A stretch of 64,000 nucleotides of DNA from Andalucia godoyi And28 (GCA_009859145.1 VRVR01000046.1:184064-248063), one strand, 5' to 3'. Numbered from the stretch's first letter, positions 15,203 through 35,245 are shown. Program-made: numbers and translations. The notes: generated from the sequence alone by a model not told the origin.

Positions 15203-18200
15203 ATGTCAGAAAAGGTGGTTGAAAAAGCAGCTGCGCGTTCAGAAGACGATGCAGGAGGCGATGGTCTGCCGACTGACGAGGACGAGTACGACTTTGACAA
15301 CGACTCGGAGGGCAACATCAGCGACGATCCTGTGGACGCTGCAGACGAGGATCTTGTGGAGGCTTCTGGATCTTCTGAGAAGGTTGCGAAGCGCGCCGAC
15401 AAGGAAAATCGAAAGAGGGAGCGCAAGGAGTCGAGCCGAGACAAGCCGACAAAGAAGAAGAAACGTACGTTGTCGAGGTTCTTGGACATCGAAGCCGGTG
15501 AGGGTGACGAGGACGAGGACGAGGGGGATGATTTCAATGGGGAAAGCCGCGAGGTGAAGAAAAACGTTGATTATTTGAAACAAAAGTCGAGCGTGAAGGT
15601 TTACAGAACCGAAGAAGAGCTGTTGAGACACTTTGAAGAGGCGTATGGGCGTGATGACGATCGCGAAATTGATGTTCGTACGGGAAAGGTTCTCGTCAAG
15701 AGAAAGAAGGTTCCAGGGGCGTCTGTAGGAGCGTCCTCGGCGACTGGTGCTGGTCAGAAACAGTCCGCTGCTGTTGCCGCGCCGGCGAAAAGACCCGCGC
15801 CGAAAGTCGCGGAGGCAGCGAGTAGAGACCAGGACGAGGACGAGGAGGAAGACGAGGATCTGTCGCGCGCACGTGCCAATGTTGCCAATGAGCTCACTGG
15901 AGATTTGGACGTGGAGTCTGAGGATGAAATGGTGGAGGCCGAAGACCAGGATGAAGAGGAGGACGAAATTGCATTCGGCGCCGACTATGATGCGTATGGC
16001 CGTCGCTCAACTGTTGTGATGCGTGGGATTCCAAAAGGCGCAAAGTTGTTCATGGTGAAGTGCCGAATCGGACATGAAAGAGAGGCAGTGAAGCAGATCA
16101 TGGATCGATATGTGGGGAGATTGGGTACACAGGCACCGCTGTTGATCAACTCGGTTGTCCAGCGAGATCACATCAAGGCGTACATCTACGTGGAGGCGGA
16201 CAACGAATCGCATGTCAAGGCAGCTATCGAAGGTGTTGCAATTATCAATCCACGGTCGATTGCGATGGTGAAAGAAGAAGACATGGCTCGTATTTTGCAT
16301 GTTGTTTCACAGAGCACATCGGTGCAGCCCGGTGCATTCGTTCGAGTTAGACGCGGTGTGTACAAGAACGACCTTGGGCAGGTTTTGGACGTGCACCCAG
16401 AGTCGGACTCTCTGACTGTTCGCATAGTCCCTCGATTGGATCTCGATGAAATTGCCGAAGCCAAGGTGATTGGTACGTCGATGTCCAAGAAAAAGAAGAA
16501 GAGTTCTGCCCTCCGACCCCCTCAGCGCAAGTTTGATGCGGAGCAGGTCAGGCAACATGTGCGAGCCGGCAGCGCGATTGCGGAACCGTTTACAAAACGT
16601 CTTGATGGCAAGACGTACAACATTTTTATGGGACAGAAGTTCTTGGGAGGATTCTTGATCAAGACAATCAACATGCAAGCTTTGCAGGTTGTCGACGTGC
16701 AGCCGTCAATTGACGAACTTGCGCAGTTCCCTGCAGAATCCACCAAATCTTTTTCTGCGACCTCTAGAGAAAATGTTTCCCAGGGCAAGGGTGCTGATCG
16801 TTCGATGGATCTTAAGAAAGGAGAGGTTGTTCGGGTTGCGGAGGGAGATATGCAGAATCTGATCGCCGTTGTTGTCCAGTGGGTGTCCAAAGATACTGTC
16901 GAAATTGCGCCAAAAGACAAAACGCTGAAACTGCCATCGTTGATTCGAGCGAATGCTTCGCAGCTCCAGAAGTTTTTCGTTGTTTCCGATCGAGTTCGTG
17001 TGATTCGTGGAATCCACACCGGCGTTACGGGTCTCGTTACACATGTTGCCGGCGTGCGTGTACGATTGGTCCCCGATACGGATGTATCACAAGAGCTGTC
17101 CGTCTTTGCGAAGGATATTGAGCTCGCCGAACTTGCAGAGCTCAAGACAGGGTCGTCTGCACTTCCTGCGGGGGCCGCCGCAGCGCCGTCTTCAGGGTCA
17201 GCGGCGACGAAGCAGATCTTCAATTTTGCTATCGAGGATCCCGTTCGAATTGATGCAGACACCGTGGGCATTGTTCTTAGTGCAGATCAGGACGCATATG
17301 CTGTTCTGGATTCCTCCGGGCGGACTCGTCGCCTTCGAGGAGCCGAGTTGGGACAACCGCTTCTCCCCGATGCAAGCAAGCGGAAAGTTAAGTGCCCGCA
17401 TGCTGCAGATCACTTCTCGAACAAGATTTCGGCCAGCGATGTCGTTCGCATCGGTGCCGGACCCCACCGTGGGCAACTTGCAACGATCTTGTGGATTCAT
17501 CACAACACGGCCTTTTGCAAGGAGACGTCGATTGCTGTTGGCACCAAAGGAGTGATCTACGTGGTGCGTACGGAGGATGTTCAGTTGGTCGGCGGTCGTG
17601 TAACCCTGGATTCGCTGTCCACGCTGAGAGGACAGGGTGCAAGTGCAATGGGCAATGATCGTGATCCTTTGTTCAGAAAACGCGTGCGCATTGTTGGTGG
17701 CTGCCACAAGGGTCTGCAGGGACGTGTGTTGTTTGCATCGGAAGAAAAGGTGCGCATTGAAGTCGAGTCACGGACTGGTCCTCCATTGGAGGTGCTGAAG
17801 AAGGATGTTCGCGAGCTGACATTCAACGGAGACGGTTTGCAGACTTCGACACCGAACACGTATGGTAATATCTCTCAAGGCGGTGCCGCAGGGTACGGGC
17901 CGGCGGCAGGCTCGTTGGCCGGATATGGGACCGGCAGCCAAGGGTATGGGTCACAGTATGATGCTTTTGCGCAATCGCAAAGGAGTATGGGAGGAGCGAC
18001 TCCGTTTCATCCTTCCTCGAGTGCAAGCGGCATGGCATCCGCATTGTCGCAAGCCACATATGCACCGACGCCTGTCAGCGGCAGCACCGCGATTGGCAGC
18101 ATGACTGCGCCCACGGGGTATTATTCCCAAACCTACAACTCGGCCACTGGCATCTATGCCCAGTCTCAAACTCCTGCTGCGGGATATGCCAGCGGTTACA

Positions 18201-18622
18201 ACACCTATGCCCAATCCCACACTCCTGCGCCCAGCAGCTTTTACGCCGAAACTCCTGCACCTACCCAGCAGATGTCTATTCCGCCTGTGAACACGTATTT
18301 GCAAGGTGTTGAAGTCTCTCTCGGGGACGGAAGAACAGCCGTGGTTCGAGAGGTCGTTCCCGAAGAAGGGTCGTACCGTATCCAGCTGCTGGATTCGAGA
18401 GGCATGTATGGAGGTGAAATCATGTCGGTTCGCGGAGACTCTGTGTTGCTGACTGCTCCTCGCGTAAGAGGCTCTGTCAAGGTCATTGCAGGCTCGGAGG
18501 GTGTTGGACGCACGATGCGCTACGAAGGCCCGCTGCCCAACGATGATCAGAAACTCATCTTGCTCGATGGAAACAATTACGTCTTTATGCCTGCTGGTCT
18601 CATCGGAAACTATGTTGCTTAG
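15203..18622 (+). CDS. SPT5: Transcription elongation factor SPT5
   Basis: Acidic N-terminus with FLDIEAGE; NGN domain KLFMVKCRIGHERE...HIKAYIYVEA; KOWs (VRVRRGVYKNDLGQV, VRIVGGCHKGLQG); G/S/Y-rich CTR with TP repeats. Confidence 0.96.
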   Translation: MSEKVVEKAAARSEDDAGGDGLPTDEDEYDFDNDSEGNISDDPVDAADEDLVEASGSSEKVAKRADKENRKRERKESSRDKPTKKKKRTLSRFLDIEAGEGDEDEDEGDDFNGESREVKKNVDYLKQKSSVKVYRTEEELLRHFEEAYGRDDDREIDVRTGKVLVKRKKVPGASVGASSATGAGQKQSAAVAAPAKRPAPKVAEAASRDQDEDEEEDEDLSRARANVANELTGDLDVESEDEMVEAEDQDEEEDEIAFGADYDAYGRRSTVVMRGIPKGAKLFMVKCRIGHEREAVKQIMDRYVGRLGTQAPLLINSVVQRDHIKAYIYVEADNESHVKAAIEGVAIINPRSIAMVKEEDMARILHVVSQSTSVQPGAFVRVRRGVYKNDLGQVLDVHPESDSLTVRIVPRLDLDEIAEAKVIGTSMSKKKKKSSALRPPQRKFDAEQVRQHVRAGSAIAEPFTKRLDGKTYNIFMGQKFLGGFLIKTINMQALQVVDVQPSIDELAQFPAESTKSFSATSRENVSQGKGADRSMDLKKGEVVRVAEGDMQNLIAVVVQWVSKDTVEIAPKDKTLKLPSLIRANASQLQKFFVVSDRVRVIRGIHTGVTGLVTHVAGVRVRLVPDTDVSQELSVFAKDIELAELAELKTGSSALPAGAAAAPSSGSAATKQIFNFAIEDPVRIDADTVGIVLSADQDAYAVLDSSGRTRRLRGAELGQPLLPDASKRKVKCPHAADHFSNKISASDVVRIGAGPHRGQLATILWIHHNTAFCKETSIAVGTKGVIYVVRTEDVQLVGGRVTLDSLSTLRGQGASAMGNDRDPLFRKRVRIVGGCHKGLQGRVLFASEEKVRIEVESRTGPPLEVLKKDVRELTFNGDGLQTSTPNTYGNISQGGAAGYGPAAGSLAGYGTGSQGYGSQYDAFAQSQRSMGGATPFHPSSSASGMASALSQATYAPTPVSGSTAIGSMTAPTGYYSQTYNSATGIYAQSQTPAAGYASGYNTYAQSHTPAPSSFYAETPAPTQQMSIPPVNTYLQGVEVSLGDGRTAVVREVVPEEGSYRIQLLDSRGMYGGEIMSVRGDSVLLTAPRVRGSVKVIAGSEGVGRTMRYEGPLPNDDQKLILLDGNNYVFMPAGLIGNYVA

Positions 18623-21959: not shown

Positions 21960-22415
<456 letters not shown>

Positions 22416-22539
22416 TTATTAATATTATTATTATTGTTGTTGTTGTAATTGTTAGGATTGTTTGTGGTCACAGCAAAATAGGTTTAGTGCTGGAAAGAAC
22501 GGTGAGACTCGGGCGCGCACACACACACACGTACACACA

Positions 22540-22576
<37 letters not shown>

Positions 22577-23055
22577 GCGCACGCACGTAGACAAATGAGG
22601 AAGAAAAAAAGAATAGTAATTATCAAAGGAAAGAAGGAAGAAGACGATCAAAGAGAAATTCGAAAACTGGAACGTCTCTTGACATTCATACTTGAGAAAA
22701 GAAAAGCCTTTCCCGAATTTCGTGCGTTGGGAGGGACTGACACGTCACGACACCACACAAGAAAGCTCAAACACTCGAAACCGAGAAGAGGACTGTCAGG
22801 CAACTGTCAGAGTTGCTCTGACACACGGTTGCATCAGGTGATGCTTGAACCGGAGGGGGAGCACAACCGTACTGCCGTCCTGGCGCTCTTTTTTCCCTTT
22901 AACCCAGTTCCCACGCACTACGTTTCCTTTGGTTTATGCCCTCTATCAACAGTGAAACGTTTTTTGATATTAATATAATATTCTATAATTAACTTATTAT
23001 TATTATTATTATTATTTGGTTTTGGTTTCTTGTTTTGCGGGAGAGGGGGAGAAGA

Positions 23056-23059
<4 letters not shown>

Positions 23060-23147
<88 letters not shown>
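23060..23147 (+). repeat. (GA)n microsatellite, about 44 units
   Basis: Direct reading; ends about 40 nt before ATG 23190. Confidence 0.96.
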
Positions 23148-23189: not shown

Positions 23190-24785
23190 ATGTCTTTGGT
23201 AAATGAAGCCTCGGCAACGTTCCGGGCGTTGCTTTCGCAGGCGTACAGTTCTCTTGGAGTGATCTCTTCTGGAAAATATCTTCCTCCGACAGAGGAGTCG
23301 GTTTCTGCGTTTCTTTCGACGAAGCAGGCTGACGAGATCAACACGGCGTCCGACACGCTTCGTACGCTGACGACGCTTTTGTATTCGCAGTATTCTGAAA
23401 TGGTGGAGTTTGATACGCTGTTCAACGAGGCATTTTCGCATCTCAAAGGAGCAATCGAGTCGATCACGACACCGGAAGACGCGGCGATCCAGCAGCTTCA
23501 TGACCAGCGGGTGTATATGCAGCAGATGTCTCTTGCGTCGCTGTCTGCGGGGCCGTCTGTGGTTCAGCCGCCTCCGGCTGCGGCGATCTCTGCTCCGTCG
23601 ACGCGGCGCTCGGTGGGGAGGTCCCTTGTGTCGGATTCCGACTTGCGCAAGGCGATTGACGAGTTCAAGCGTGAGCAGAGGATCAAGAACAGGAAGGCTG
23701 CGGGAAAGGGAGATGACAACGATGGTGCAAGCGGACAAGGAAACGGAGATCATAATGCGGAGGATGATGATGGCTGGGATGAACAGGACGTCAGCCCACC
23801 GTCCTTGCTGTATAATTCACACTCGATTGTCGGCGGAAAGGACTCCAAAACGAGATTGACGGCGTTTGCCAACCGCGTGCTTACCGAGTGGCTCGAGCAG
23901 CATTGTTTGGATCCATATCCAGATGCACAGGAAAAGGACATCTTGTGCGGAGTGACGGGGCTTTCAAAGAGACAGATTGACAATTGGTTCGTTAACAATA
24001 GAAAGAGAAAGTGGCAGCCGCTGTTTGACTTTCTGAAGGATCGGAATCTGGTTGAAACCAATGAGGAGTCGTCAGAAAACTTTCGAAAATTGCTTGTTGG
24101 ACATAATATTTCACAAATTGCAGAATTGTCAAAGAGGAAGTCGTCATCACAGGCTGGTGCGGCAGGCGATCTTCAGCATGATGTTGCAGGTGCCAACGAC
24201 GACGACAATGATGATGTCGACGACGATGTTGATGATGATGATGATGATGATGACGCCAGCGACGATGGCGAGGGCGATCGCAATCACCTCAGTGAGAATA
24301 ATATTCGTAGTATGGAGAGGGGTGAGGATGAAGAAGCTGGAAATGATGTAGAAGAAGTCGTTCTAAATGACGACGAGCCAAATGTTTCGCAACCGAAGGA
24401 CAAGCGCCATGCGCCTTCCGCTTCATCGCGCGGCAAGAGATCTTCAGACAATTTCGGTGCTTTGCAGTCAACAAAGAAGGAGTCATTTGCAGGGGTGGAA
24501 TCCACCCAGCAGGACGATAATGACGACGACAGCGACGATGTGGATGACAGCGGAACAGCGGAAGACGTTGCCCAAAACACAGGGAGCGCTGCAAAGTCCA
24601 AGAAACAAGCCAAGACCGCTATGGAGCACGGCCCATCCACCGCGAAGGGCAAAGCTCCCAGAAGAAGGCCTGCAGATATGGTCGAAAATTCCCATGATGA
24701 CGCTGCACAGTCAAAAGCAAAACGCCATCGATCGTCGAACCTGGACAATTTGGACGCTGTGCAGCCAACCAAGTCCAAAGATTAA
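23190..24785 (+). CDS. TALE-class homeodomain transcription factor A (531 aa)
   Basis: VLTEWLEQHCLDPYPDAQEKDILCGVTGLSKRQIDNWFVNNRKRKW (H-x3-PYP loop extension, WFxN); helical N-terminus; acidic tail. Confidence 0.92.
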   Translation: MSLVNEASATFRALLSQAYSSLGVISSGKYLPPTEESVSAFLSTKQADEINTASDTLRTLTTLLYSQYSEMVEFDTLFNEAFSHLKGAIESITTPEDAAIQQLHDQRVYMQQMSLASLSAGPSVVQPPPAAAISAPSTRRSVGRSLVSDSDLRKAIDEFKREQRIKNRKAAGKGDDNDGASGQGNGDHNAEDDDGWDEQDVSPPSLLYNSHSIVGGKDSKTRLTAFANRVLTEWLEQHCLDPYPDAQEKDILCGVTGLSKRQIDNWFVNNRKRKWQPLFDFLKDRNLVETNEESSENFRKLLVGHNISQIAELSKRKSSSQAGAAGDLQHDVAGANDDDNDDVDDDVDDDDDDDDASDDGEGDRNHLSENNIRSMERGEDEEAGNDVEEVVLNDDEPNVSQPKDKRHAPSASSRGKRSSDNFGALQSTKKESFAGVESTQQDDNDDDSDDVDDSGTAEDVAQNTGSAAKSKKQAKTAMEHGPSTAKGKAPRRRPADMVENSHDDAAQSKAKRHRSSNLDNLDAVQPTKSKD

Positions 24786-25218
24786 CAGCGACTCGATGTA
24801 CACACGCCCTTCCTGCCCTTTTTATTTTTTATTATTTTATTTTTGCGCATTACATGTCCAATCGTTTTTGTGCAGTGAGCTCTTCGTGGTTCCTCAGGGG
24901 CGCGTCTTTTGCGATTGAGAACGTGGTTCATTTTCTCGTTGCTGCTCAAAGATAGTATTTATGTGTTTGTGGACTTCGTACCGTGCTCGCACTCTGATGG
25001 TTTTTCTCTTCTCTGTTATCCTTGTTTTTCAAGTACAGACATTTTTTGTTCATTCTGTTCGCTGGGATTTCTTCTATATACATGCTCATTTTCTTCTTCT
25101 TCAAAGTTTGTACTGCATCTTCATGCCCAATCCACTTCCCCGCAAGAAAAAGAACGGGGAGACGTCACCTATGCGACCATGCCCAAATCAATTCTTCTTG
25201 ACGTTCTTACCAGCATGT

Positions 25219-26370
25219 TCAGTGGGACAGTAGCTTAACAAGAATGCGCAGCGTGTCTTCTCCGTGTGCCTCGACAATTTCCTCGCACGAGTCCTGCAGG
25301 TGCGCCAGTTCGTCCTTCCATTTTCTGTACAAAATATCTCTCATTTGCTGCAGCCGTCCACTCGCAGCATTCTGGCTCTGCATTGTCAGAACCTCGACAC
25401 ATCGGAACGCCACAATCCACTTGTTTCGCAGCGATGCCGAGTCTGTCGAAAAGAGCAGTGTCAAGCTCGCTCCGGTTGTGATCACAAACAAGAACTTTCC
25501 CTCTGATTTGACCAACGAGTCGTCAATGAGGACGGAAAACTCGCCAAGCGGGATTACCTGGATCGGCATCTGATCCTGGTTGGAATGAAACAGATACAGT
25601 GTGTTCTCCACAAGCGCCATAAAGCACGGTTTCCACGGAAAGTCTCTCACCTTGACGTCTCGAATCATTAAATCCGATGCCATTTCCGCAAACGACTCTA
25701 CCGGAATGGATCGCAAGTATACGTACGGATTGTTTGCTCGTGTGTCCCAGGTAGTCGATGCAGCACCGCCACTCCGCACAGACGCAGACGTCGACGGCGA
25801 CAGCAATGGTGACACCAACAACGACGATGAGGATGACGACGACGGGCTGTCAAACAGGACCCTGGAGCGCGGATAGCTCTCAAGACTTAGTCGATGCAAA
25901 GGAACTGCAGAAACGACACTTTGGTTCAATATCGGTGGAATGTGGCCTGCAAGCGAGCGTTGGGAAGCTGGCACGGGTGCAAATACCAACAATCCAGGAT
26001 TCTTCAGCGATGGAGGCCCAGCCACCTCCCTGTCCCTGTCCGTGTCCCTGTCCCTGTCCGTGTTCCTGTCGGCGGTCGTGGCTGTGGTCGAGGGTGGTTC
26101 CAGAACATGGTCGACGTGTGACTGTTGTAGACTGAGGCCTCTGTTCCTGCGAGACGACTTGGCAGTTGGCGACGACGCGGACAAAGACCGGGGGAAGAAG
26201 TAGTGCTCCGGAAGCGACGGCAGGTGCAGCACCGCTGGGCCAAACGGACTGTAGCAAAACGGAAATGGTGAAGACGAAGAATGACTCGACTCGGACGACG
26301 ATGCATGGTGTGCAACTAACGGAGATTGTGGCGCATCAATCGAAACGACCAGCGCATGATTTCTGCTCAT
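25219..26370 (-). CDS. PH-domain protein with low-complexity N-terminus
   Basis: WKPCFMALVENTLYLFHS...IPLGEFSV...FLFVIT...LLFSTDSASLRNKWIVAF (PH C-terminal helix Trp). Confidence 0.82.
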   Translation of the reverse strand: MSRNHALVVSIDAPQSPLVAHHASSSESSHSSSSPFPFCYSPFGPAVLHLPSLPEHYFFPRSLSASSPTAKSSRRNRGLSLQQSHVDHVLEPPSTTATTADRNTDRDRDTDRDREVAGPPSLKNPGLLVFAPVPASQRSLAGHIPPILNQSVVSAVPLHRLSLESYPRSRVLFDSPSSSSSSSLLVSPLLSPSTSASVRSGGAASTTWDTRANNPYVYLRSIPVESFAEMASDLMIRDVKVRDFPWKPCFMALVENTLYLFHSNQDQMPIQVIPLGEFSVLIDDSLVKSEGKFLFVITTGASLTLLFSTDSASLRNKWIVAFRCVEVLTMQSQNAASGRLQQMRDILYRKWKDELAHLQDSCEEIVEAHGEDTLRILVKLLSH

Positions 26371-26495
26371 GGTGTCTGTTGATCCATACCCTTTATTTCA
26401 TTAACCACAGCCAAAAAAAAGAAAACAAAAATGGAAGAAAGGAAAACAAAACCAAAACAACTGAGAAAGAGCAAATAAGAACAGAAAAAACGTAC

Positions 26496-26712
26496 CGTAG
26501 TGCACTACGATCGCCCCTTTCAAGACTCTCCAAGTAAATCTCTCTGCCGGATCTTTTCTGGTTCCATATCCACTTGAGGCGTCTTCGTTAAAAGTCCGGC
26601 ATTCCGGTACTCAAGTAGGGGATGCGTTCCCAAGTTCTCCATTTTGGTGCGCAGACCCACTAACATCCGACTCTAAATAGCATATTGGATGGGTGCTGAT
26701 GCGGATTTTTTT
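26496..26712 (+). ncRNA. Candidate structured ncRNA (pseudoknot, terminal hairpin, T7 run), family unassigned
   Basis: Interleaved stems 26545-57/26590-601 and 26568-78/26610-23; hairpin 26649-26702; TTTTTTT at 26706-12. Confidence 0.35.
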
Positions 26713-26907
26713 AAAAGTCATTTTATTTCAAAGACTCTGGATGAGGCTGTAGCTGCGCGACGAAAAATTCGGAGAGTTTGCGTTGGAGGGTAGTACTTAT
26801 CTTATTATTATTATTATTATTTTGGTTTGATTTCTTCTTCTTCTTCCTTCCCGCATAGGTACAGACAGACATCATTTCTTGTGGGGATCTTGTGGGAGTG
26901 GGAAGTG

Positions 26908-27651
26908 ATGGAGGACCAAATACTGTTTCCGCATGGCTCGATTCCGTCGTCATTGCGCGTGTTTTGTAATTTATCTGGGCTTTTCCCAGACGCCGTGCTG
27001 AAAAAGTCTGTGAGGCTTGCCGCGGAACTGCTTGCGACGACCGCGACTGGGTGTAGTAGTGTTGGTGGAGGTTCAGTGGGCGTGGACGAGGTGCTTACAG
27101 AGGAGATGCAAGCTGCGGCAAACTCGGAGCTCCTTGCGCTGCTTGTGAAGATACCTGAAGGATCGGTCAAGAAGACGCAAAAGGATGATTTGGCGAACTT
27201 GGTTCAGCATGGCGAGCCGTTCACTACGATTGTTACTGCCTGTTTCTTGCTCTTGCAACAGGCGCTGCGACACTCGACAATGTCGGTGGCGTCTGTGATG
27301 GAGCAAATCAAGGTTTTTGGGGTCCCTGGCTCCGTGTACGCGGCGATCGAAGCAGTGCTGTCGAAAAGAGGAGACGAGCTTAGGCAATGCTTGGCAGTTA
27401 GGACGGCTGCAATTGGGCTTCCGCACTTGGCAAACGTCCGCTGGAGAATCGACGTCGTCATCTCAACTTCGACTGTAAACAAGATCATGAGACCCGTCCT
27501 CCAGCTCGAGCTCATCGTGCGGGGCGGGGCGGCAACGACCGTCGAGCTCCCCATGGACAAGCTTGCAGAGCTGAGGTTTGCCGTCGCTACCGCTCTCAAA
27601 GACTTGCAGCAACTCGAAGAACACCCTATTCTCAATATCAAGCCTCACTAG
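26908..27651 (+). CDS. COMMD5: COMM domain-containing protein 5
   Basis: C-terminal COMM domain LPHLANVRWRIDVVISTSTVNKIMRPVLQLEL...ELPMDKLAELRFAVATALKDLQQLE, matching the COMMD5 pattern. Confidence 0.85.
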   Translation: MEDQILFPHGSIPSSLRVFCNLSGLFPDAVLKKSVRLAAELLATTATGCSSVGGGSVGVDEVLTEEMQAAANSELLALLVKIPEGSVKKTQKDDLANLVQHGEPFTTIVTACFLLLQQALRHSTMSVASVMEQIKVFGVPGSVYAAIEAVLSKRGDELRQCLAVRTAAIGLPHLANVRWRIDVVISTSTVNKIMRPVLQLELIVRGGAATTVELPMDKLAELRFAVATALKDLQQLEEHPILNIKPH

Positions 27652-27683
27652 GCCGATACTTCGACTGTGGCTCACGCTTCGGC

Positions 27684-29516
27684 TTAGGGTTTCCTCTTCC
27701 TGCTTCCCTCTTCCCTCAAGTTATAATATTGTAAAGATGAAAACGGTACTGTTCTCGCTTTACGCTCGTTGTGCGTTTCTTTGTTCCTACTCGGAGATGC
27801 ACCTCTGGACATGGAAAGCTGAGAAGCTGATATCAGTGATGACGAGGATGATGACGAGGATGACGAGGGGGCAGAACTGAAGCTGCGCAGACGACACAAA
27901 TCCTGAATATCTGTAATGTTTGCCGCTGGCAGACTCTGGCCAAAACACTGAGACACCTCTGCGCCCGAGAGAACGAGCCCCTTCGTCTGCAGTCTTTCAA
28001 AAAACGGCATCCATCGACGTTTCCGGTTGTTGGTGAACCAGTTGTCCAGCTGCTTCCTGCTCATTCCTGTTTTTTGTAAAAGGTCTTTCTTTTCCTCTTC
28101 TCCAGGATACGGATCAGCAATATGGTCAAAGCTGAACATCCAGTCTTCCAGCAGCCGAGTAACATCGCAGGCCACTTCACTCGGCGACGAGCGTCCACCA
28201 ACGTGAGCAAGTGCTTGATTCCATTGGTCCTTGGACTCGTCATGCGGGTTCGACGGACAGGAATTCGAGATGTCGGCTGACTCGGAACCTGTCCGTTCCT
28301 TTCGCACCGACCGTCTATAGTCATCGATCTCGACACGCAGCACTTCTCTGCTGCACAATATCTTTCCCATCACCGTTCTCTTGAGCGCAAGGCCTTGCGG
28401 ACACATGAACAAGTGGTCTTCAAGAGAGTTCGCCGCTTGCATGGCGGGAAGAGCTCCATTATTCGCACGTGGTTCGTCCTGCGGTTGCAAAACCGGTATG
28501 TGCCCCACCGAGTCTGCCAGCATTCTCAACGCGCTATCCATCAGTTGCTGAAACTCACGGTCCTCCACATGTACGCTGTGTAGAGCACTCATCCAAGCCT
28601 GAGCAGTTTCAAGGAGCTTCGCTTCGAGTCTGCCTTTTCTGTCTGTTTCTGAGCTCGCAGCTTCGAAATAGTCAGCTGCGAATGCAGCAGCGATTTCAAA
28701 CTGGAGCTGAGGGCGAGCAGCCAAGTACGCGCACAGATCTTGTGCAGTGCGCACTGAATGAGAAGGAGCTTCCACCGGCAAGAGAAGAAATACTGAAATG
28801 ACGGCTATTTCCGCGAGCTTCTCATGGAGCAGGTCGCAGATCTGGCGGATAGTGTCTTCGATCAGACGGGACGAGGACACCTCAGGTTCCGGGTTGCCGG
28901 TGTGCATTGTGAGGGATGCGTCGTCACTAGCGTCGTGAAGTTGCCCCTGCAGACTTTCAAACAGGTCACAGCAGTCGAGTGAATCTGCGGACTGCGTGGG
29001 AGCCGGCAGCCGATGTGCAGAGTAAGTGATACATTCGGGTGCCCACGAACGGACACCGAGATGTGAGTGGGAGTGTGGATGCGGGTGCGGTTCTGTGGTA
29101 GTCGAACGGGAGGAGCCTGCTCGAGGATCGCAGCAGTCAACCGGGGACATGTGCCGCTGACATCGCGCCGGAGTGATCAGGTACTCGGAAACAGGATCGA
29201 GAGACGATGGACTCATGGACGTTCGGAAAGGGCGAGGGGGCGTGAAAAGCAGGGATGGCGCGGGATACTCGGAAGACGTGCTATGGAAAGGATCCGAGCA
29301 GACTGGAGGAACAAAGAGAACTGCTGAGCCGTCAAGTAGCTCCATGTCGGCTCGAGAGTGCAGTACCCCCGTTGATTCCTGGTTCGGGAGATGGGCTGTT
29401 TTGAAGTTCGATGGGGGAGAACTGGCAGCCGACGTGTCACCACCGCCTGACGCACCCATCTTGCGCAGGCTTGTTGACTGACCTGCGGCACTGGCCGTCG
29501 ATTTTGTCTTTCGCAT
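27684..29516 (-). CDS. TALE-class homeodomain transcription factor B (start uncertain; in-frame ATGs up to 29645)
   Basis: LLEDWMFSFDHIADPYPGEEEKKDLLQKTGMSRKQLDNWFTNNRKRRWMP. Confidence 0.9.
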   Translation of the reverse strand: MRKTKSTASAAGQSTSLRKMGASGGGDTSAASSPPSNFKTAHLPNQESTGVLHSRADMELLDGSAVLFVPPVCSDPFHSTSSEYPAPSLLFTPPRPFRTSMSPSSLDPVSEYLITPARCQRHMSPVDCCDPRAGSSRSTTTEPHPHPHSHSHLGVRSWAPECITYSAHRLPAPTQSADSLDCCDLFESLQGQLHDASDDASLTMHTGNPEPEVSSSRLIEDTIRQICDLLHEKLAEIAVISVFLLLPVEAPSHSVRTAQDLCAYLAARPQLQFEIAAAFAADYFEAASSETDRKGRLEAKLLETAQAWMSALHSVHVEDREFQQLMDSALRMLADSVGHIPVLQPQDEPRANNGALPAMQAANSLEDHLFMCPQGLALKRTVMGKILCSREVLRVEIDDYRRSVRKERTGSESADISNSCPSNPHDESKDQWNQALAHVGGRSSPSEVACDVTRLLEDWMFSFDHIADPYPGEEEKKDLLQKTGMSRKQLDNWFTNNRKRRWMPFFERLQTKGLVLSGAEVSQCFGQSLPAANITDIQDLCRLRSFSSAPSSSSSSSSSSLISASQLSMSRGASPSRNKETHNERKARTVPFSSLQYYNLREEGSRKRKP

Positions 29517-30009
29517 CCTCACAACGGACCTTTTTACACTGCTGATCCAAGAGAGAAGAAAACGAAGGTTGTTTTTTTGGGGCATTCTTGTGCAACTTGC
29601 GGTGATTGGTCGGTCGGTCTCCGTCATTCTCCATCGTTGAGCCATCACCCATCACTTTTCATGCACCCCAGAGCCATCACAGATGTTATTTCTTGGGGGG
29701 AGAGGTTCGCGTTACTTTTGGTCTCTACAATAGAAGCTTTCGAGTATTCTGAAAGATAATGCACGGGATTACAATGTGAAGGGTGTTTTTTTCGTTTCAT
29801 CCATTATGTAGAAGAACATGAACAGATGATCGGATGTGCGGGCTTTGCAAGCATTGGGAAAAGAGGGGTGGTGGGTGCATCCTGCATGAGTGCTTGTATT
29901 ACAAAAACGCTTTGCTGCGGTTGCGAGAGGAACCGGCGGAACGGACGAACTCGCCCGCAATGCAGGGAAAGCTGTCGCTTTGCGGTCCTCCTGGAGTCCT
30001 TTTTGGAGA

Positions 30010-31764
30010 TTATGCCTCGAGCATGGCAAGGATCGAGACGGGATCGAACGGAAGCCTGTCCAGCTCACCGCCACTCCTGCCCAACGTCGGCGCCATTGTC
30101 GTCCAGTACTTGCAAAGCATTTCGTGAATTTCGAGCCTTCTGTCTGGAATTTCGAACAACACACAGCGGTTTGTGATTCGGTCCGTGCACCGACCGGAAT
30201 CTCGGAGAGGGCTGTGTGATGGATGGTGCGAAGGGTCCTCGAAATGCAGAGTCTGCATGATTCCGCTGTCGAGGGGCCAGTCTTCAGCCATTGTGCTCGC
30301 AGCCCGGACTGACGACGGCAACTCTGGCACCGGTTCCGCATGCAGTTCGGGGCTGATTTGGACTGGAGCAGGAGCAGTCGAACCTTGCGTGTTCTGCAGT
30401 GGAACGGCTGGTGACGAGTCCTCCCCGTGATCTGTCAGGGGAGATCCGTCTTCTGCCTTGCCCTTGCCCTTGCCCTTGCCCTTGCCTGCATCTTCCAGTT
30501 TGCTACATGTTCTTTCGGGGGTGCAGAGCTGCTCTTGAGTATTTGTGAAAGAGTCTCCGCCACTCTCATCTCTGGCCCCCCCATTTTGCAGGTCTTCTTC
30601 GAGTGCCAGGTAGTTGCCGCGATCCAGCTCGTCCAGCAAGAGCCGAACGGATTTACGAATAGCGTCGGATTTGGCGACAGAGACGCAGGCGACCGCATCC
30701 TTCGTGCGCTCCACCAAGTCGAGCACCACGGGGAATGTTCGCGGCCTTGTCGTGGCCTGGACGGAAAACGCTTCTGCGGTCTCCTCCGCAGACAAGGTGT
30801 TTGAACTGAGAATGTGGACGTCGTCTTCGCGAGAAAGAAACCATCTCAGAAACTGTGTCAGCATCAGGGACAGGTCCCCTTTGATGCCGTCGGAAGCGAA
30901 TACCAAGCAGAAATGCAGAATGATCAGCGACCAGGCATATGGAGTAACGGAGGTTGAGGACGGATCTGCAAGGCCATTGCGTTTGGCCCAGTTCATGAAC
31001 AACACATACAGGGGACGGAACATGAAGTGCGCCATGGATTCGTCAATAATCCGAATTGCGCGAGCTGCACAAATAGTGTTGTTTGCCGTGATGTCTACTT
31101 CGGTGTTGGATGCCGTGTGAAGAAGCGTGATGACGGGGGTCTTTGCCGAGAACAGCGATCTTCGCACCTCAAACTCGGTGGCCTTGCTGTTCTTGACAGC
31201 ACGGCAAACAGCACGAAGGATCTTCTTAATGTTCGGCTCCTCTTTCTGGTTTGTTGCATTCTGTCCCACTGAAACACAAAAATCAACGTCGGATCCACGA
31301 AGCGCAAGGTTGCATGCATGCGAGCCAATGAGCACAAGACTGAACCCGGCAAGCTCTGGCTCCCCTGCTTTTCGTAGCAAGCTGTCCAGACACTGCTGAA
31401 TTGTCGAAGGAACCGTAATGAACGCGGAAGATGGGGCTGCAGTTCGCACAGTGTTCCACAAATGCTTATTCATATCATCATCGGCGATGCTCGCATGCAG
31501 CGCCACGGTTGTCCGTCCGTTTTGGTCGATTAGCACGCGAAACAAGCACGGATACTTACAAAAGAACGCCGCAAGGCCTCCTTGGGACACCCAGAAATCA
31601 TGCACCGTCACTTCCTGAACTTTGCATGTGTTTGCAACCCGCCTTCCCACTTCGTTTGCAAGAGTCGCCAGCAAAACTGCGCTGTGATCTGGTCGTTCGG
31701 CAAGGTAGGTGAATGTCACTTCCACAGCATAATAGCTGATTTGGCACAACAGAAGCGACCTCAT
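30010..31764 (-). CDS. Non-canonical nucleotidyltransferase (Cid1/TUT/GLD-2/Trf-like) with N-terminal winged-helix-like domain
   Basis: LIGSHACNLALRGSDVDFCV (hGS-x10-SDVD); AKTPVITL...EVDITANN (third Asp); FRPLYVLFMNWAKRNGL...TPYAWSLIILHF (PAP-associated region). Confidence 0.85.
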   Translation of the reverse strand: MRSLLLCQISYYAVEVTFTYLAERPDHSAVLLATLANEVGRRVANTCKVQEVTVHDFWVSQGGLAAFFCKYPCLFRVLIDQNGRTTVALHASIADDDMNKHLWNTVRTAAPSSAFITVPSTIQQCLDSLLRKAGEPELAGFSLVLIGSHACNLALRGSDVDFCVSVGQNATNQKEEPNIKKILRAVCRAVKNSKATEFEVRRSLFSAKTPVITLLHTASNTEVDITANNTICAARAIRIIDESMAHFMFRPLYVLFMNWAKRNGLADPSSTSVTPYAWSLIILHFCLVFASDGIKGDLSLMLTQFLRWFLSREDDVHILSSNTLSAEETAEAFSVQATTRPRTFPVVLDLVERTKDAVACVSVAKSDAIRKSVRLLLDELDRGNYLALEEDLQNGGARDESGGDSFTNTQEQLCTPERTCSKLEDAGKGKGKGKGKAEDGSPLTDHGEDSSPAVPLQNTQGSTAPAPVQISPELHAEPVPELPSSVRAASTMAEDWPLDSGIMQTLHFEDPSHHPSHSPLRDSGRCTDRITNRCVLFEIPDRRLEIHEMLCKYWTTMAPTLGRSGGELDRLPFDPVSILAMLEA

Positions 31765-32294
31765 ATTACGTCGCTTTGCTTGATTGTTTTGTGGTGGTGG
31801 AAAAAACAAACAATAAATTGAGAAGCAACCAGTGTGAAAATTGACAATGTTAAATAAAAACAAGAGAGAAGAAGCGATGTTTTTTCTGTTTCGTTTTTTC
31901 CAAAAAATAAATTAATTAATAAATGCAGAGAAAAGAGTCTTTTCGGATTGTGGTTTTCTCTCTCTTATTTTTCGTGTTTCTTTTTCCGTCCCAGCTTTCC
32001 CAATGGAAGAAGAAGACACGAGAAACGGAAAGAGTTGTTTTGCAAAAAATTAAAATCCCACGGTCGTTCCCGCCAAATCACTACAGCCCGCGCTATCCAT
32101 TTTTGGCAATTTTCTCCGATCATCGCGGGTAAGCATTCTGTTAGGGAACAGAAAAATGAGCATCGTTAAATTTCGTCATGCATCATTGTCTCCAGAACGA
32201 CAAATGAATTAATTGTATTTTTGGGCGATCGTCTTTTGCAAAGTTAACGAATATCATCTGCGTTTATTTTTGAATGTGACGACGCATTTGCTGT

Positions 32295-32885: not shown

Positions 32886-33590
32886 ATGAGTAGTGCATCG
32901 CCTTCTGTGAAAGAGCCTCCCGTGTCAATCAGCAAGGACGAGTGGTTCCAGGCAATGAGCTCCGTCGACATTGACCACCATCAGATTGACAATCTGATTA
33001 TGAACTATCTTGTGATTGAGGGGTATCAAGAAGCTGCCCAGCTTTTTGAAACCGAGTCTGGAGTATCTGCAGGCATCGATCTGTCGACAATCCAAGAAAG
33101 AATGCAAATCCGATCTGCGGTGGAGCGAGGAGACATTCACGCTGCGATCGACAAGGTTAATGACTTGAATCCAGAGATTCTGGACACAAACCAAACGCTG
33201 TGTTTCCATCTGCAGCAGCAGAAGTTCATCGAGCTTATCCGCCTGAATAAGATTGAAGAGGCACTGGATTTCGCGCAGGATGAAATGGCCCCGAGGGCTG
33301 CAGCGGACCCCAGTCTTGTCGAGGATCTCGAGCGGACCATGACGCTCCTGGCGCTCGGCGGATTGCCTAATGTCCCGGGTGTCTCGGAGTTGTTGGATGT
33401 GTCACAGCGTTACAAGACTGCGTCAGAGCTGAATGCTGCGATCCTGGCGTCGCTGAGCCAGGAAAAGGATCCGAAGCTGCCCACGCTGTTGCGCATGGTC
33501 GCGTGGGTCCAGGAAGAGCTCTCGCAAAGAATGTCCTTTCCAAAAATCAAGGATTTTGAAACGGGAGAGTGGACCGTCGTTGACAAGTAA
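32886..33590 (+). CDS. GID8: CTLH/GID E3 complex subunit GID8 (LisH-CTLH-CRA)
   Basis: IDNLIMNYLVIEGYQEAAQLF (LisH); RMQIRSAVERGDIHAAIDKVNDLNPEILD (CTLH); LERTMTLLA, SQRYKTASELNAAIL, PKLPTLLRMVAWVQEEL. Confidence 0.96.
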   Translation: MSSASPSVKEPPVSISKDEWFQAMSSVDIDHHQIDNLIMNYLVIEGYQEAAQLFETESGVSAGIDLSTIQERMQIRSAVERGDIHAAIDKVNDLNPEILDTNQTLCFHLQQQKFIELIRLNKIEEALDFAQDEMAPRAAADPSLVEDLERTMTLLALGGLPNVPGVSELLDVSQRYKTASELNAAILASLSQEKDPKLPTLLRMVAWVQEELSQRMSFPKIKDFETGEWTVVDK

Positions 33591-33715: not shown

Positions 33716-35245
33716 TTAAAAAAAGGTGGCGTCTGCATGGAGGATGCTCACAGCAGCGCGCCTAGAAAACTGAATTCGCAGTTCGCGCAGCCTGGAAAGG
33801 TCTGTTTTCGGAAGAGAGTTTCTGACCGAGTCAATGAGCCCCAAGCAGATGGACAGCTGAACGGGATCGAGAGCGAACTCGGAAGGCGATAGTGTCTGGA
33901 GATGCTCGATAAGCGCCAAGCGGAACTGGTGGGAGAGCCGTGAAGCATGCTGCAGCATGACAGTCAGCTCTGCCGACGACAGAGAGTGGCGGAGGGTTGG
34001 TGAAAATAGCTTTTGGAGCGAAGCCAGCCAGCCTTGTTGGGCCGTCGGATGGACCTTGAGCGCCTCGGCAAGCGTGAGCGTCTCCTCCAGCTCGCGTTCG
34101 TCAAAGGCATAAGTCCCGACAACCTTTGACCATTGACCGGTCTTGACGTACTCGGCTCTCCAAGGAGACTTTGTCAGCCAGGATTCAAACGTCATGATGC
34201 GATTCTTCGACACCCACTTTGCCCATTCATTCCATTCTCCTTCCGAGTCCACGTGCAGTTCGTCGAGGAGCTTCGTGGTCAAATCACGAGAGATTCGAAG
34301 GGAATACTCGAGTGCAACGAGTGGCAAACTGGGAAATATCTCCATAATGTAGTCCTCCATGTACTGCTTCATCACGTCTTCATCGACGAGCTTTTTGACA
34401 AAGAACAAATGTGCCAAGTGCGCAGCAAACCAAATTTGAGGAGGCTCAAAGGAATCTCTGACTTTCAGCAAGATGTCCACCGGTCGGTTCTCCATGATTA
34501 GTGCAATCAGTTCTGCAAACCAGATTCCCATCTCATCTTCTTGTTTGTCTTTTGAGCTGTGGTAATCTCTGAATGCATTCTGCAGCTGCATGATGGCGTC
34601 CTCTCGTTTCAGAACTGGAAACCGAAAGAGCAGTCGTGCCGCGAACAACTCCAAAGCACCTGGAGCGTGTTCAATCATGGCGTGATCCTCTCCAGAGAGA
34701 ATTTGCCAAATCTGAAGAGTATACTCATCATCCGAAAGCGGAATTCGGCGCAGCGATGCTTGCCAGGACCGAAACACTGCCAGATAGTCCTGCGCATGAT
34801 GCGGATTCTGGTGCTGCTGCGAGGCCTGAAGCACAGGAAACATCGAAATTGCACACGCAAATTCAGGGTTTTGGTCTTCAACGTAAAGGAGAGGGATGTC
34901 AAAAGACCCAACCATCGCCCTTTGCACAGCCAGTTTTCCAATTTCTGCCCTACTCAACTTGTCCAGCGACACCGGATCGACACACAGCGACGACTTGACA
35001 AACGGCAGAAACAGCTCTTGAAAACACATGCTTGCTCGCTGCGGCACAAGAAGAAACGAATGCACAAGCTGCAGTGCGCCGAGCAGCCAAAAGGACTCGA
35101 GCGACTTGCGACTTCCCAGTGCCAATGCATACACCGAGACCGTTTCCTCGAGACTGCGCGCATCCGGCCGATCCCCAAAGTTTAGAAACTGCTCACACGA
35201 ACTCAGTTCACACTCTAAACCGTCCGCCGCCTCCTCGACTTGCAT
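33716..35245 (-). CDS. NUP85: Nucleoporin Nup85-like
   Basis: YLAVFRSWQ, LQIWQILSGE, ELFAARLLFRFP, WFAAHLAHLF, LPLVALEY: motif order matches the Nup85 alpha-solenoid. Confidence 0.7.
   Translation of the reverse strand: MQVEEAADGLECELSSCEQFLNFGDRPDARSLEETVSVYALALGSRKSLESFWLLGALQLVHSFLLVPQRASMCFQELFLPFVKSSLCVDPVSLDKLSRAEIGKLAVQRAMVGSFDIPLLYVEDQNPEFACAISMFPVLQASQQHQNPHHAQDYLAVFRSWQASLRRIPLSDDEYTLQIWQILSGEDHAMIEHAPGALELFAARLLFRFPVLKREDAIMQLQNAFRDYHSSKDKQEDEMGIWFAELIALIMENRPVDILLKVRDSFEPPQIWFAAHLAHLFFVKKLVDEDVMKQYMEDYIMEIFPSLPLVALEYSLRISRDLTTKLLDELHVDSEGEWNEWAKWVSKNRIMTFESWLTKSPWRAEYVKTGQWSKVVGTYAFDERELEETLTLAEALKVHPTAQQGWLASLQKLFSPTLRHSLSSAELTVMLQHASRLSHQFRLALIEHLQTLSPSEFALDPVQLSICLGLIDSVRNSLPKTDLSRLRELRIQFSRRAAVSILHADATFF

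Follow-up and report, generated by a model that had tools for sequence, protein, structure and literature searches.

A convergent pair of TALE homeobox paralogues enclosing PH-domain and COMMD5 genes in Andalucia godoyi

Are two neighboring TALE homeobox genes of the jakobid protist Andalucia godoyi partners in a regulatory switch, as the original prediction proposed, or simply the two products of an old local duplication? The genes, here called A and B, lie in a 64-kb stretch of DNA (the window), in which they encode the only WFxNxR homeodomains. The locus is part of the A. godoyi nuclear DNA.

Gene order and protein architecture

Genes A and B are convergent, tail to tail, with 2,898 bp from stop codon to stop codon. 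Gene A (23190..24785, + strand) is an intronless open reading frame (ORF) of 531 aa and gene B (27684..29516, − strand) an uninterrupted ORF of 610 aa; both matched Pfam Homeobox_KN (E values, 7e−16 and 7e−15, respectively). Only two genes lie between them, a PH-domain gene (25219..26370, −; Pfam PH E value, 1e−7) convergent with A and an orthologue of COMMD5 (26908..27651, +; Pfam COMM E value, 5e−11) convergent with B. The closest solved structure in PDB to the COMM gene was COMMD5, at 59.5 bits compared with 30.5 for COMMD4. Thus, the predicted arrangement, two TALE genes ∼2.9 kb apart with nothing but a PH gene and COMMD5 between them, was borne out.

The product of gene A matched database protein P0001 at 100%. 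Its N-terminal helical domain (aa 1 to 116; 23190..23537, +) has predicted helices at residues 3 to 25, 35 to 44, 47 to 90, and 97 to 116, with EFDTLFNEAFSHL at aa 73 to 85, and is kept among A-type orthologues (TFDGMxxEAxxxL). AlphaFold2 pLDDT was 71 to 85 for aa 1 to 80 and ∼42 to 58 for aa 81 to 120, helix 4 included. A pre-homeodomain block (aa 136 to 172; 23595..23705, +) consists of the strand TRRSVGRSLVSD and the amphipathic helix DLRKAIDEFKREQR, modeled at residues 143 to 145 and 149 to 172 (pLDDT, 80 to 87), and contains alignment columns invariant across all family members. The TALE homeodomain (aa 216 to 278; 23835..24023, +) has the standard three-residue loop extension and the recognition helix WFVNNRKRKW. 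It aligned with the MEIS1/2 homeodomains without gaps (45 bits), and the top Foldseek matches to the A model were MEIS1 and TGIF1 (rmsd, 0.6 to 2.0 Å). A post-homeodomain extension (aa 279 to 317; 24024..24140, +), kept in all six family members, is predicted to form a strand (residues 288 to 290) and two helices (291 to 304 and 308 to 317) and ends in NISQIAEL. The C-terminal tail (24141..24782, +) is of acidic/basic low complexity, with D/E runs, KRHR-type clusters, and tandem GAC/GAT repeats at 24197 to 24255; it did not align with the tails of the orthologues and is unconserved.

The start of gene B is uncertain, with in-frame upstream ATGs as far as 29645; its orthologue is P0040/P0283. 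The first 214 aa (28875..29516, −) form an S/P/H-rich extension without counterpart in P0040 or the A-types in the alignment, and are probably disordered, judged by composition and absent conservation. The N-terminal helical region that follows (aa 216 to 338; 28503..28871, −) has four predicted helices that follow the order of those in A and are of similar lengths (model residues 2 to 30, 44 to 52, 56 to 100, and 106 to 124), modeled at low pLDDT (34 to 63), and includes a KNOX2/HM2-like motif, EFQQLMDSALRML, at aa 321 to 333. The pre-homeodomain block of B (aa 377 to 409; 28290..28388, −), matched to A and P0040 by BLASTP, combines the strand LKRTVMGKIL with the helix VLRVEIDDYRRSVRK (model strand 170 to 172 and helix 176 to 195; pLDDT, 82 to 89). 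In the TALE homeodomain (aa 441 to 505; 28002..28196, −), with recognition helix WFTNNRKRRW, the loop extension is five residues; the loop (WMFSFDHIADPYP) exceeds that of MEIS by two residues and is equally long in P0040. Phmmer aligned this homeodomain with MEIS1/2 at 46 bits, the MEIS row being gapped by two residues. The post-homeodomain extension (aa 506 to 546; 27879..28001, −) ends in NITDIQDL.

Comparison of the P0011 sequence with the ORF located a 185-nt GT..AG "intron" of the public gene model ANDGO_08109 at 27926..28110 (−). Its removal would delete homeodomain helices 2 and 3 and shift the reading frame, and the segment encodes the residues that B shares most strongly with A, P0040, and MEIS. 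This intron is probably an annotation error.

Class assignment and paralogy of A and B

By the TALE criterion of three extra residues between helices 1 and 2 with PYP and WFxNxR (Pfam Homeobox_KN), both proteins belong to the superclass, scoring 58 (A) and 55 (B) bits against a cutoff of 24. The closest solved relatives of both homeodomains were MEIS1/2, followed by TGIF, PKNOX, and PBX; the animal MEIS/PKNOX/TGIF proteins are their best homeodomain match (45 to 46 bits to MEIS1/2; rmsd, ∼1 Å), sharing the three-residue loop extension, PYP motif, and WFxNxR recognition helix. Since the homeodomains of A and B are equally MEIS-like, the pair represents a within-class duplication and not a MEIS/KNOX versus PBC/BELL pairing.

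The isoleucine found at homeodomain position 50 in MEIS and KNOX (WFIN) is replaced in A and P0040 (WFVN) and in B (WFTN), B has its two extra loop residues, Pfam matched Meis_PKNOX_N in neither, and only the A/B family has the pre- and post-homeodomain modules. The ELK domain that abuts the homeodomain in the KNOX class gave no Pfam match, and an acidic linker of ∼45 to 55 aa separates the pre-homeodomain helix from the homeodomain. For the PBC class (PBC-A/B plus WFGN), Pfam PBC was not matched at an E value of ≤10, position 50 is V or T rather than G, and PBX homeodomains scored below MEIS against both A and B. The POX region (SKY plus BELL) upstream of BELL homeodomains was likewise unmatched, although it is present in P0147, a true BELL protein recovered by the same search.

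The original prediction had also claimed a shared MEINOX-like dimerization motif, which was not supported here. None of Pfam KNOX1, KNOX2, ELK, Meis_PKNOX_N, PBC, or POX matched any of six N termini at an E value of ≤10, and the N termini of A and B were not significantly alike. With hhalign, the B-type N-terminal profile reached a score of 23.4 against KNOX2 (equaled in 1 of 400 shuffles) by a method whose KNOX-versus-MEIS positive control failed (P = 0.30). A-type against MEIS or KNOX was not significant, nor was B-type against MEIS (P = 0.18), and because the method missed this same control these negatives carry little weight. By HMMER, B alone resembled KNOX2 (26 of 2,000 shuffles; P ≈ 0.013) and P0040 was not significant. 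The KNOX2-like motif is weak and appears confined to the B-type (P ≈ 0.002 to 0.013), where VEDREFQQLMDSALRML lines up with GEDPALDQFMEAYCEML of KNOX2 (P ≈ 0.002 with the B-type profile; P ≈ 0.013 with B on its own). NWFVNNRKRKWQP resembles KNOX NWFINQRKRHWKP, and the short motif is similar to the start of HM2/KNOX2.

Beyond the homeodomain, the predicted similarity of A and B held for the flanking blocks and not for the N termini. BLASTP aligned the two at 33% identity over 181 aa (E value, 9e−27), from the pre-homeodomain LRKAIDEFKREQR/LRVEIDDYRRSVR through the homeodomain to NISQIAEL/NITDIQDL. Taken alone, the post-homeodomain extension was significantly similar over roughly 40 aa (P ≈ 7e−6; 0 of 2,000 shuffles), as was the pre-homeodomain part (P ≈ 0.001; 4 of 2,000). 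The N-terminal pairings LLSQAYSSLGVISSGKYLP/LLHEKLAEIAVISVFLLLP and EFDTLFNEAFSHL/EFQQLMDSALRML did not rise above chance: Smith-Waterman comparison of the N termini gave P = 0.08 (178 of 2,000 shuffles), column shuffles reached the observed hhalign score of the A-type and B-type profiles in 50 of 120 cases, and the A-type HMM scored at shuffle level against the N termini of B (249 of 3,000) and P0040 (1,367 of 3,000). How the EF motifs of the two proteins should be aligned is ambiguous. MAFFT, hhalign, and the AlphaFold2 helix order placed EFQQLMDSALRML of B opposite the fourth helix of A, EDAAIQQLHDQRVYM, and the originally proposed EF pairing emerged only by way of the B-type orthologue P0040 (MFDSFLDNACIQLAGFADS versus EFDTLFNEAFSHLKGAIES of A). 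The AlphaFold2-predicted secondary-structure elements of A and B come in the same order. Their N-terminal domains are not demonstrably homologous. At the DNA level, A and B share no similarity, so the duplication is old.

Family, synteny, and selection

An exhaustive profile HMM search of 1.84 billion protein representatives identified a family of six members: A, B, one protein of each type from an environmental relative, and a further two A-types that belong to a third organism. Full-length profile matches were limited to P0001 (A), P0002, P0003, P0004, and P0011 (B), with P0040 matching as a B-type; the other ∼8,700 matches covered the homeodomain region only, a few extending into the acidic linker. 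A neighbor-joining (NJ) tree supported the family at 90%, the A-type clade at 100%, and B with P0040 at 62%. Orthology of P0040 to B is also indicated by the five-residue loop, the shared pre- and post-homeodomain blocks, and adjacency to COMMD5. The best database matches to the B homeodomain (43%) were diatom (stramenopile) TALEs such as Skeletonema ACHAWT_011243, which share with B a five-residue loop (WMMSPEHVAHPYP) and also have WFVNNRKR; however, they are without the jakobid-type N-terminal domain, pre-homeodomain block, and post-homeodomain extension and fell outside the A/B family in the NJ tree. On sequence grounds, A and B define a small lineage-specific TALE class, undescribed in the literature searched. 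The class is so far known in A. godoyi and two related organisms only.

Gene order in relatives matched the expectation of shared synteny. In the environmental relative, the gene order on contigs L003 and L093 is B-type(+), COMMD5(−), one additional gene(−), PH(+), and then the C terminus of the A-type gene(−); L004, which bears the A orthologue P0002/P0282, shares a 170-nt overlap (99.4%) with the end of L003. The relative therefore retains the block of B, COMMD5, PH, and A with its TALE genes convergent, and with one gene extra between COMMD5 and PH, even though identity to A. godoyi is only 34% for COMMD5 and 32% for PH (A, 56.5% over 299 aa; B, 36%). The COMMD5 orthologue adjoins the B-type gene on both L003 and L093, and the PH orthologue adjoins an A-type gene in both other organisms (tblastn identity, 32% on L003 and 29% on L002). 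On L002, from the third organism, P0003(+) and PH(−) are convergent. E2, GNAT, TUTase, CTLH, and Nup85 were not found on the relatives' contigs, and the visible flanking genes differ. For the third organism, whose contigs are short, two A-type genes (P0003 and P0004) but no B-type were found, so the A/B pairing may not be universal in the family.

Within the population of the environmental relative, A-type sequences differed by 13 synonymous and 3 nonsynonymous changes and B-type sequences by 14 and 6, with none of the nonsynonymous changes in the homeodomain. Both TALE genes are under purifying selection in this population.

Partnership, rival explanations, and biological meaning

Domain content, paralogy, family size, synteny, and purifying selection are together held with high confidence. 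The explanation we favor, on balance, is that A and B are two working products of an ancient duplication within a small TALE class and may be partners of each other. In each protein, a MEIS-like homeodomain, which would bind DNA, is accompanied by a family-specific "extended homeodomain," with a strand and helix before it and a strand and two helices after it, parts that probably pack together. An acidic linker is the third part of each protein, and a four-helix N-terminal domain of ∼115 aa, diverged almost beyond recognition between A-type and B-type, could serve as a protein-protein interaction module. The duplication predates the divergence of Andalucia from the environmental relative, and A-PH-COMMD5-B has persisted as a four-gene block ever since.

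By analogy with MEIS/PBX and KNOX/BELL, and with the duplication-and-subfunctionalization model for TALE proteins (Joo et al. 2018; PMC6219170), A with B is the likeliest partnership, although as a specific claim it is only tentative. That the pair acts at a life-cycle transition is a weaker suggestion still. Classical TALE partners come from different classes, whereas the homeodomains of A and B are both MEIS-like, which counts against partnership. To our knowledge, the genes of classical TALE partners are unlinked in the genome, and linkage is therefore not in itself evidence of partnership. KNOX/BELL partners of Archaeplastida, such as Chlamydomonas GSM1/GSP1, trigger the zygote program; A and B likewise are TALE paralogues that differ in their N-terminal helical domains, but Pfam detected no KNOX1, KNOX2, ELK, or POX in their family, they are within-class duplicates rather than KNOX and non-KNOX, and they are linked, whereas KNOX and BELL genes are not.

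The strongest competitor, less probable than the favored explanation but a real possibility, is an ordinary old local inverted duplication, with A and B acting as independent TALE factors (monomers, homodimers, or with other partners) held together by gene-order inertia in compact genomes. The lack of significant similarity between the N-terminal domains, the failure of Pfam to find a known dimerization domain in six N termini, the single class of both homeodomains, and the location of P0004, the further A-type copy of the third organism, away from COMMD5 and PH are all in keeping with it, and adjacency of four genes in two or three genomes could itself be inertia. However, the block has persisted at 32 to 34% passenger-gene identity while visible neighbors on either side differ, both paralogues, already present before the species diverged, have been preserved intact by purifying selection, and shared flanking modules with sharply diverged N-terminal domains are the pattern expected after partner subfunctionalization.

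Basidiomycete HD1/HD2 (bE/bW) and yeast a1/alpha2 are mating-type homeodomain pairs; the fungal pairs unite a TALE-like with a typical homeodomain gene, and the two genes are adjacent, divergently transcribed, and multiallelic. The original prediction named a mating-type regulatory locus as one candidate; in the HD1/HD2 sense, such a locus would have allelic self/non-self N termini and suppressed recombination across 23 to 30 kb. A and B are also linked homeodomain genes that stay together in every haplotype seen, and their N termini vary between species and could carry partner specificity. Nevertheless, both are TALE and convergent, with two housekeeping-type genes (PH and COMMD5) between them, rather than a divergent TALE/non-TALE pair. 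In the two to three haplotypes compared, all from the environmental relative and not Andalucia itself, the strong allelic divergence looked for was absent: two haplotypes from one metagenome were collinear with coding divergence of 2 to 3% throughout, the A-type alleles were 3 amino acids apart, and the B-type N-terminal domain had diverged least of all segments (2 of 420 nt, with 600 nt identical; 0.5% versus 2 to 3% elsewhere), its alleles being nearly identical. The very few SNPs reported in the Andalucia genome paper (PMC7050145) were also counted against this reading. This reading is disfavored and very improbable; the locus does not resemble an allelic mating-type locus.

Least probable of all is that B is degenerating or homeodomain-less, leaving one working TALE plus a relic or dominant-negative isoform: the ANDGO_08109 product (514 aa, without helices 2 and 3) lacks any Pfam domain and 185 nt falls within the 55 to 756 nt of verified Andalucia introns (PMC7050145), but the length of the "intron" is not divisible by three, splicing it out would append a 48-aa hydrophobic nonsense tail, the unspliced ORF encodes a complete TALE homeodomain with W48, F49, N51, and R53 all present, resemblance to A and P0040 runs 40 aa past it, and the orthologue is an uninterrupted ORF with zero nonsynonymous homeodomain changes between haplotypes.

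Beyond the favored explanation of A and B as ancient, functional paralogues, a more speculative and rather doubtful extension is that they form a Discoba TALE heterodimer system gating a cryptic sexual or cyst transition, as either an ancestral MEINOX-type relic or a reinvention. We know of no description of sex in the lineage of Andalucia. Elsewhere in Discoba, the TALE genes reported for Naegleria gruberi include one homologous to MEIS/KNOX and one homologous to PBC, and none was reported for Bodo saltans (PMC6219170). The Naegleria proteins carry recognizable MEINOX or PBC domains (PMC6219170), whereas Pfam recognized neither in the jakobid family. If such a system exists, the B-type may retain a KNOX2/HM2-like helix of an ancestral eukaryotic MEINOX-type partnership, or the pair would have originated independently by duplication of a homodimerizing TALE; the conserved A-PH-COMMD5-B block would then reflect coregulation.

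Two convergent TALE genes and the model of gene B

Genes A (23190 to 24785, plus strand) and B (27684 to 29516, minus strand) both scored well over the threshold of the Pfam Homeobox_KN model and carry the only WFxNxR homeodomains in the 64-kb window. The original prediction was largely right in what it observed: Pfam searches and ORF analysis agreed that two convergent TALE genes, with 2,898 bp from stop codon to stop codon, bracket only a PH-domain gene (25219 to 26370, minus strand) and a COMM-domain gene (26908 to 27651, plus strand) whose closest solved relative is COMMD5. Other neighbors encode Spt5 (15188 to 18622), a UBC-type E2 (21960 to 22403), a noncanonical poly(A)/TUTase-like nucleotidyltransferase (30010 to 31863), a LisH-CTLH protein (32886 to 33590), Nup85 (33716 to 35245), and RAD50 (51370 to 55071; a 1,233-aa ORF in a 90% cluster with EukProt EP00762 ANDGO_08011). 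These genes around A and B are ordinary housekeeping genes, with no sign of a sex- or mating-related island among them. The RAD50 cluster and the public model of B (ANDGO_08109) assign the window to the nuclear genome of the jakobid Andalucia godoyi (Discoba). Long unbroken ORFs on both strands and a G+C content of about 50% fit with the compact, roughly 20-Mb genome of A. godoyi, in which introns are mostly absent (PMC7050145).

The 790 bp that separate the E2 gene from the start codon of A contain two long microsatellites, (CA)28 at 22518 to 22573 and (GA)54 at 23041 to 23147; in the frame of the ORF 5′ of that codon, (GA)n translates as ERERER. A 38-nt element consisting of (TTA)n followed by TTTGGTTTTGGTTTCTTGTT was found on the plus strand both 5′ of A (22997 to 23034) and 5′ of COMMD5 (26802 to 26839), with 89% identity between the copies. 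It may be a promoter or 5′-untranslated region element common to the two genes, or mere low complexity.

The public protein model of B (P0011; ANDGO_08109) is 514 aa long and has no Pfam domain on record. It includes a 185-nt GT..AG intron (28110 to 27926, minus strand) that removes helices 2 and 3 of the homeodomain, shifts the frame, and leads into a hydrophobic tail. The skipped stretch, 27926 to 28110, is where B is best conserved with A, with MEIS, and with P0040, the B-type protein of an environmental relative, in which the orthologous ORF is uninterrupted. On these sequence comparisons the intron is almost certainly a prediction error, and the possibility that B is a pseudogene or a gene without a homeodomain was rejected on the same grounds; a minor isoform without the homeodomain may exist. 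On the 5′ side of the annotated ATG of B, the reading frame stays open (29517 to 29648) and contains other in-frame ATGs, one of them at 29645, which makes the true start uncertain and could add up to 44 residues. In the published Andalucia proteome, B thus appears as a domain-less hypothetical protein, and as the gene model removes the homeodomain of B, surveys by domain will count too few TALEs in this reference genome for excavates.

Paralogy, predicted anatomy, and the MEINOX question

BLASTP aligned A and B with 33% identity over 181 aa (E value, 9e−27); the match starts in a block about 80 aa N terminal to the homeodomain and extends about 40 aa beyond it. When the parts were compared separately using 2,000 shuffles, the post-homeodomain extension (P of about 7e−6) and the pre-homeodomain block (P of about 0.001) were each significantly similar, whereas the N-terminal 120 to 130 aa were not (P = 0.08). 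The predicted similarity beyond the homeodomain therefore held for the two flanking modules but did not rise above chance for the N termini, and no mode of hhalign or HMMER gave a significant match between A-type and B-type N termini. The pairing originally proposed, EFDTLFNEAFSHL of A with EFQQLMDSALRML of B, is one of two possible registers, neither of them significant; most alignments and the order of helices favor the other, which places the B motif opposite helix 4 of A. A repeat search detected no similarity between A and B at the DNA level, indicating that the duplication is old.

Structures were predicted using AlphaFold2 for A, with a shallow family alignment, and for aa 215 to 548 of B. 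The N-terminal helices of A were placed at residues 3 to 25, 35 to 44, 47 to 90, and 97 to 116, with pLDDT values of 71 to 85 over aa 1 to 80 and about 42 to 58 over aa 81 to 120. These are followed by a disordered stretch, a 3-residue strand (143 to 145), a helix (149 to 172; pLDDT, 80 to 87), an acidic disordered linker, the homeodomain, a second strand (288 to 290), and two helices. The elements of B match those of A in order and length: N-terminal helices of 29, 9, 45, and 19 residues, predicted at low confidence (pLDDT, 34 to 63), and then a strand, a helix, the homeodomain, a strand, and two helices. Each model holds exactly two short strands, one on either side of the homeodomain, and they presumably pair with each other. 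From these models we infer that the conserved flanks build an extended homeodomain within one molecule and not a dimer interface. The homeodomains of A and B were each closest to those of MEIS1/2, followed by TGIF, PKNOX, and PBX. Foldseek searches of the PDB with the A model returned homeodomains only, with no match for the N-terminal domain.

None of the Pfam domains KNOX1, KNOX2, ELK, Meis_PKNOX_N, PBC, or POX was detected in six N-terminal regions, even at an E value of ≤10, and membership of A and B in the PBC, BELL, or KNOX classes was rejected. Profiles were also compared with N-terminal sequences from 101 MEIS/PKNOX and 19 KNOX proteins using hhalign with column-shuffle controls. A-type profiles matched MEIS and KNOX at chance level, and the positive control, KNOX against MEIS, likewise was not significant (P = 0.30). 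As the accepted MEINOX relationship was not recovered, negatives from this comparison are uninformative and provide no evidence of absence. The B-type profile aligned to KNOX with a score of 23.4, reached by 1 of 400 shuffles (Gumbel P = 0.002), with VEDREFQQLMDSALRMLA opposite the beginning of KNOX2, GEDPALDQFMEAYCEMLTKY. The same motif was picked against MEIS (ELDNLMIQA; P = 0.18). Using HMMER, the score of B alone against KNOX2 was reached by 26 of 2,000 shuffles, and P0040 aligned at the same KNOX2 position without significance. After correction for about five comparisons, the resemblance of B to KNOX2 is suggestive rather than conclusive. A MEINOX-like motif common to A and B, as had been proposed, was not demonstrated, given the Pfam results and the lack of significant similarity between the two N termini.

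A small TALE family with a conserved four-gene block

A profile HMM of the conserved region was searched against 1.84 billion representative proteins and gave about 8,700 TALE hits, only six of which shared the architecture outside the homeodomain. These were A and B of Andalucia; P0002/P0282 (A-type) and P0040/P0283 (B-type) of the relative, from JGI metagenomes 3300042922 and 3300042934 and Logan run SRR22388075; and P0003 and P0004 (both A-type) of a third organism, from Logan run SRR15116022. An exact-sequence look-up of A among contigs gave no match. A word-indexed homology search with B missed A and the rest of the family, its hits being limited to the public model of B and diatom homeodomains, and the exhaustive HMM search was needed. 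A metagenome DNA scan, on a set without the relative's contig L003 or the P0002 contig L004, yielded 79 loci, all unrelated TALEs matching at the homeodomain level, and no new member. A 47-aa cluster member, P0281, was rejected as an unrelated peptide from unrelated contigs.

P0040 and B have in common an unusual 5-residue loop between helices 1 and 2 (LEDWLFDVDHVLHPYP versus LEDWMFSFDHIADPYP), a pre-homeodomain block (RRSVVGRLL...LKVAVAAFRD), and the post-homeodomain sequence SGAQLTERIGQGL. In a neighbor-joining tree of the core region, support was 90% for the family, 100% for the A-type clade, and 62% for B with P0040. The diatom (stramenopile) TALEs P0013, P0136, and P0160 carry WFVNNRKR together with the 5-residue loop of the B-type (WMMSPEHVAHPYP); this longer loop may predate the jakobid family or be convergent.

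The gene order on the 6.5-kb contig L003 of the relative and on its sister haplotype L093 was Sec20(−), a small ORF, the B-type gene(+), COMMD5(−), an extra gene(−), PH(+), and the end of the A-type gene(−), represented by its final 33 codons. The separate 1.2-kb contig with P0002 shares a 170-nt overlap (99.4%) with the end of L003, and with the gene order this shows that the relative also has the block, its TALE genes convergent as in Andalucia. The block is kept even though identity to the Andalucia proteins is just 34% for COMMD5 and 32% for PH. The extra gene (L003, 3772 to 4710; L093, 3761 to 4582) encodes a proline- and asparagine-rich signal-peptide/transmembrane-like protein and is not in the Andalucia block.

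In the third organism, P0003 is followed by a convergent PH orthologue, and P0004 lies elsewhere, adjoining a DUF829 gene. These two A-type genes (L001, 749 to 2854, and L002, 582 to 2402, the latter carrying P0003) share 47% identity in the core and look like a second, independent duplication inside the family; no B-type gene was found in run SRR15116022. The outer window neighbors (E2, GNAT, TUTase, CTLH, and Nup85) were absent from these contigs of the relative and the third organism, and the gene 5′ of the B-type gene in the relative differs from that in Andalucia. In this small sample it is thus the four-gene block that has been conserved as a unit, an adjacency that may also reflect short-range gene-order inertia.

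Constraint and functional interpretation

Of the genes in the block, A has changed much the least from Andalucia to the relative (56.5% identity over 299 aa, N-terminal domain included); B has 36% identity, over the core only. Alleles in the relative's population differ at 13 synonymous and 3 nonsynonymous codons in the A-type gene and at 14 and 6, respectively, in the B-type gene, with none in the homeodomain of the latter; the synonymous excess indicates that both are functional. The two haplotypes are collinear and diverge by 2 to 3% in coding and 4 to 10% in intergenic sequence. The least diverged part of the haplotypes is the B-type N-terminal domain (2 of 420 nt), contrary to the pattern expected of a multiallelic specificity domain. 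On the two or three haplotypes available, the predicted mating-type locus is thus unlikely, and an allelic locus of this kind was rejected. A tract of 600 nt (L003, 1461 to 2060; B-type codons 22 to 221) is identical to L093 where about 7 synonymous differences were expected, possibly through a sweep, gene conversion, or nucleotide-level constraint.

A and B are functional, linked TALE genes that form an old and conserved pair and belong to a new lineage-restricted class. A literature search found no published work on jakobid TALEs; the excavates covered by Joo et al. (2018; PMC6219170) were Naegleria, with 12 TALEs including one MEIS/KNOX-like and one PBC-like, and Bodo, with none. In the model of those authors, heterodimeric TALEs arise by duplication and subfunctionalization of a self-associating TALE (PMC6219170). 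A and B share the DNA-binding core, differ sharply in their N-terminal helical domains, and have both been kept since before the species split. Because this pattern is the one expected after these steps, an A:B partnership is the likeliest specific mechanism, a tentative proposal about which doubt outweighs confidence. Its main rival is that A and B are simply two independent paralogous factors. A life-cycle role for the pair, also part of the original prediction, seems less likely again than the partnership.

Heterodimeric TALEs are known as switches for the diploid program in plants, green algae, brown algae, fungi, and amoebae, and their presence already in the last eukaryotic common ancestor has been argued. 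To our knowledge, Discoba is the supergroup least sampled for TALE partnership, with TALEs reported in Naegleria only and none in Bodo. A jakobid that is available in culture, has a tiny and intron-poor genome, and keeps a conserved set of two TALE genes would offer a tractable test of whether this partnership logic is ancestral or was reinvented repeatedly.
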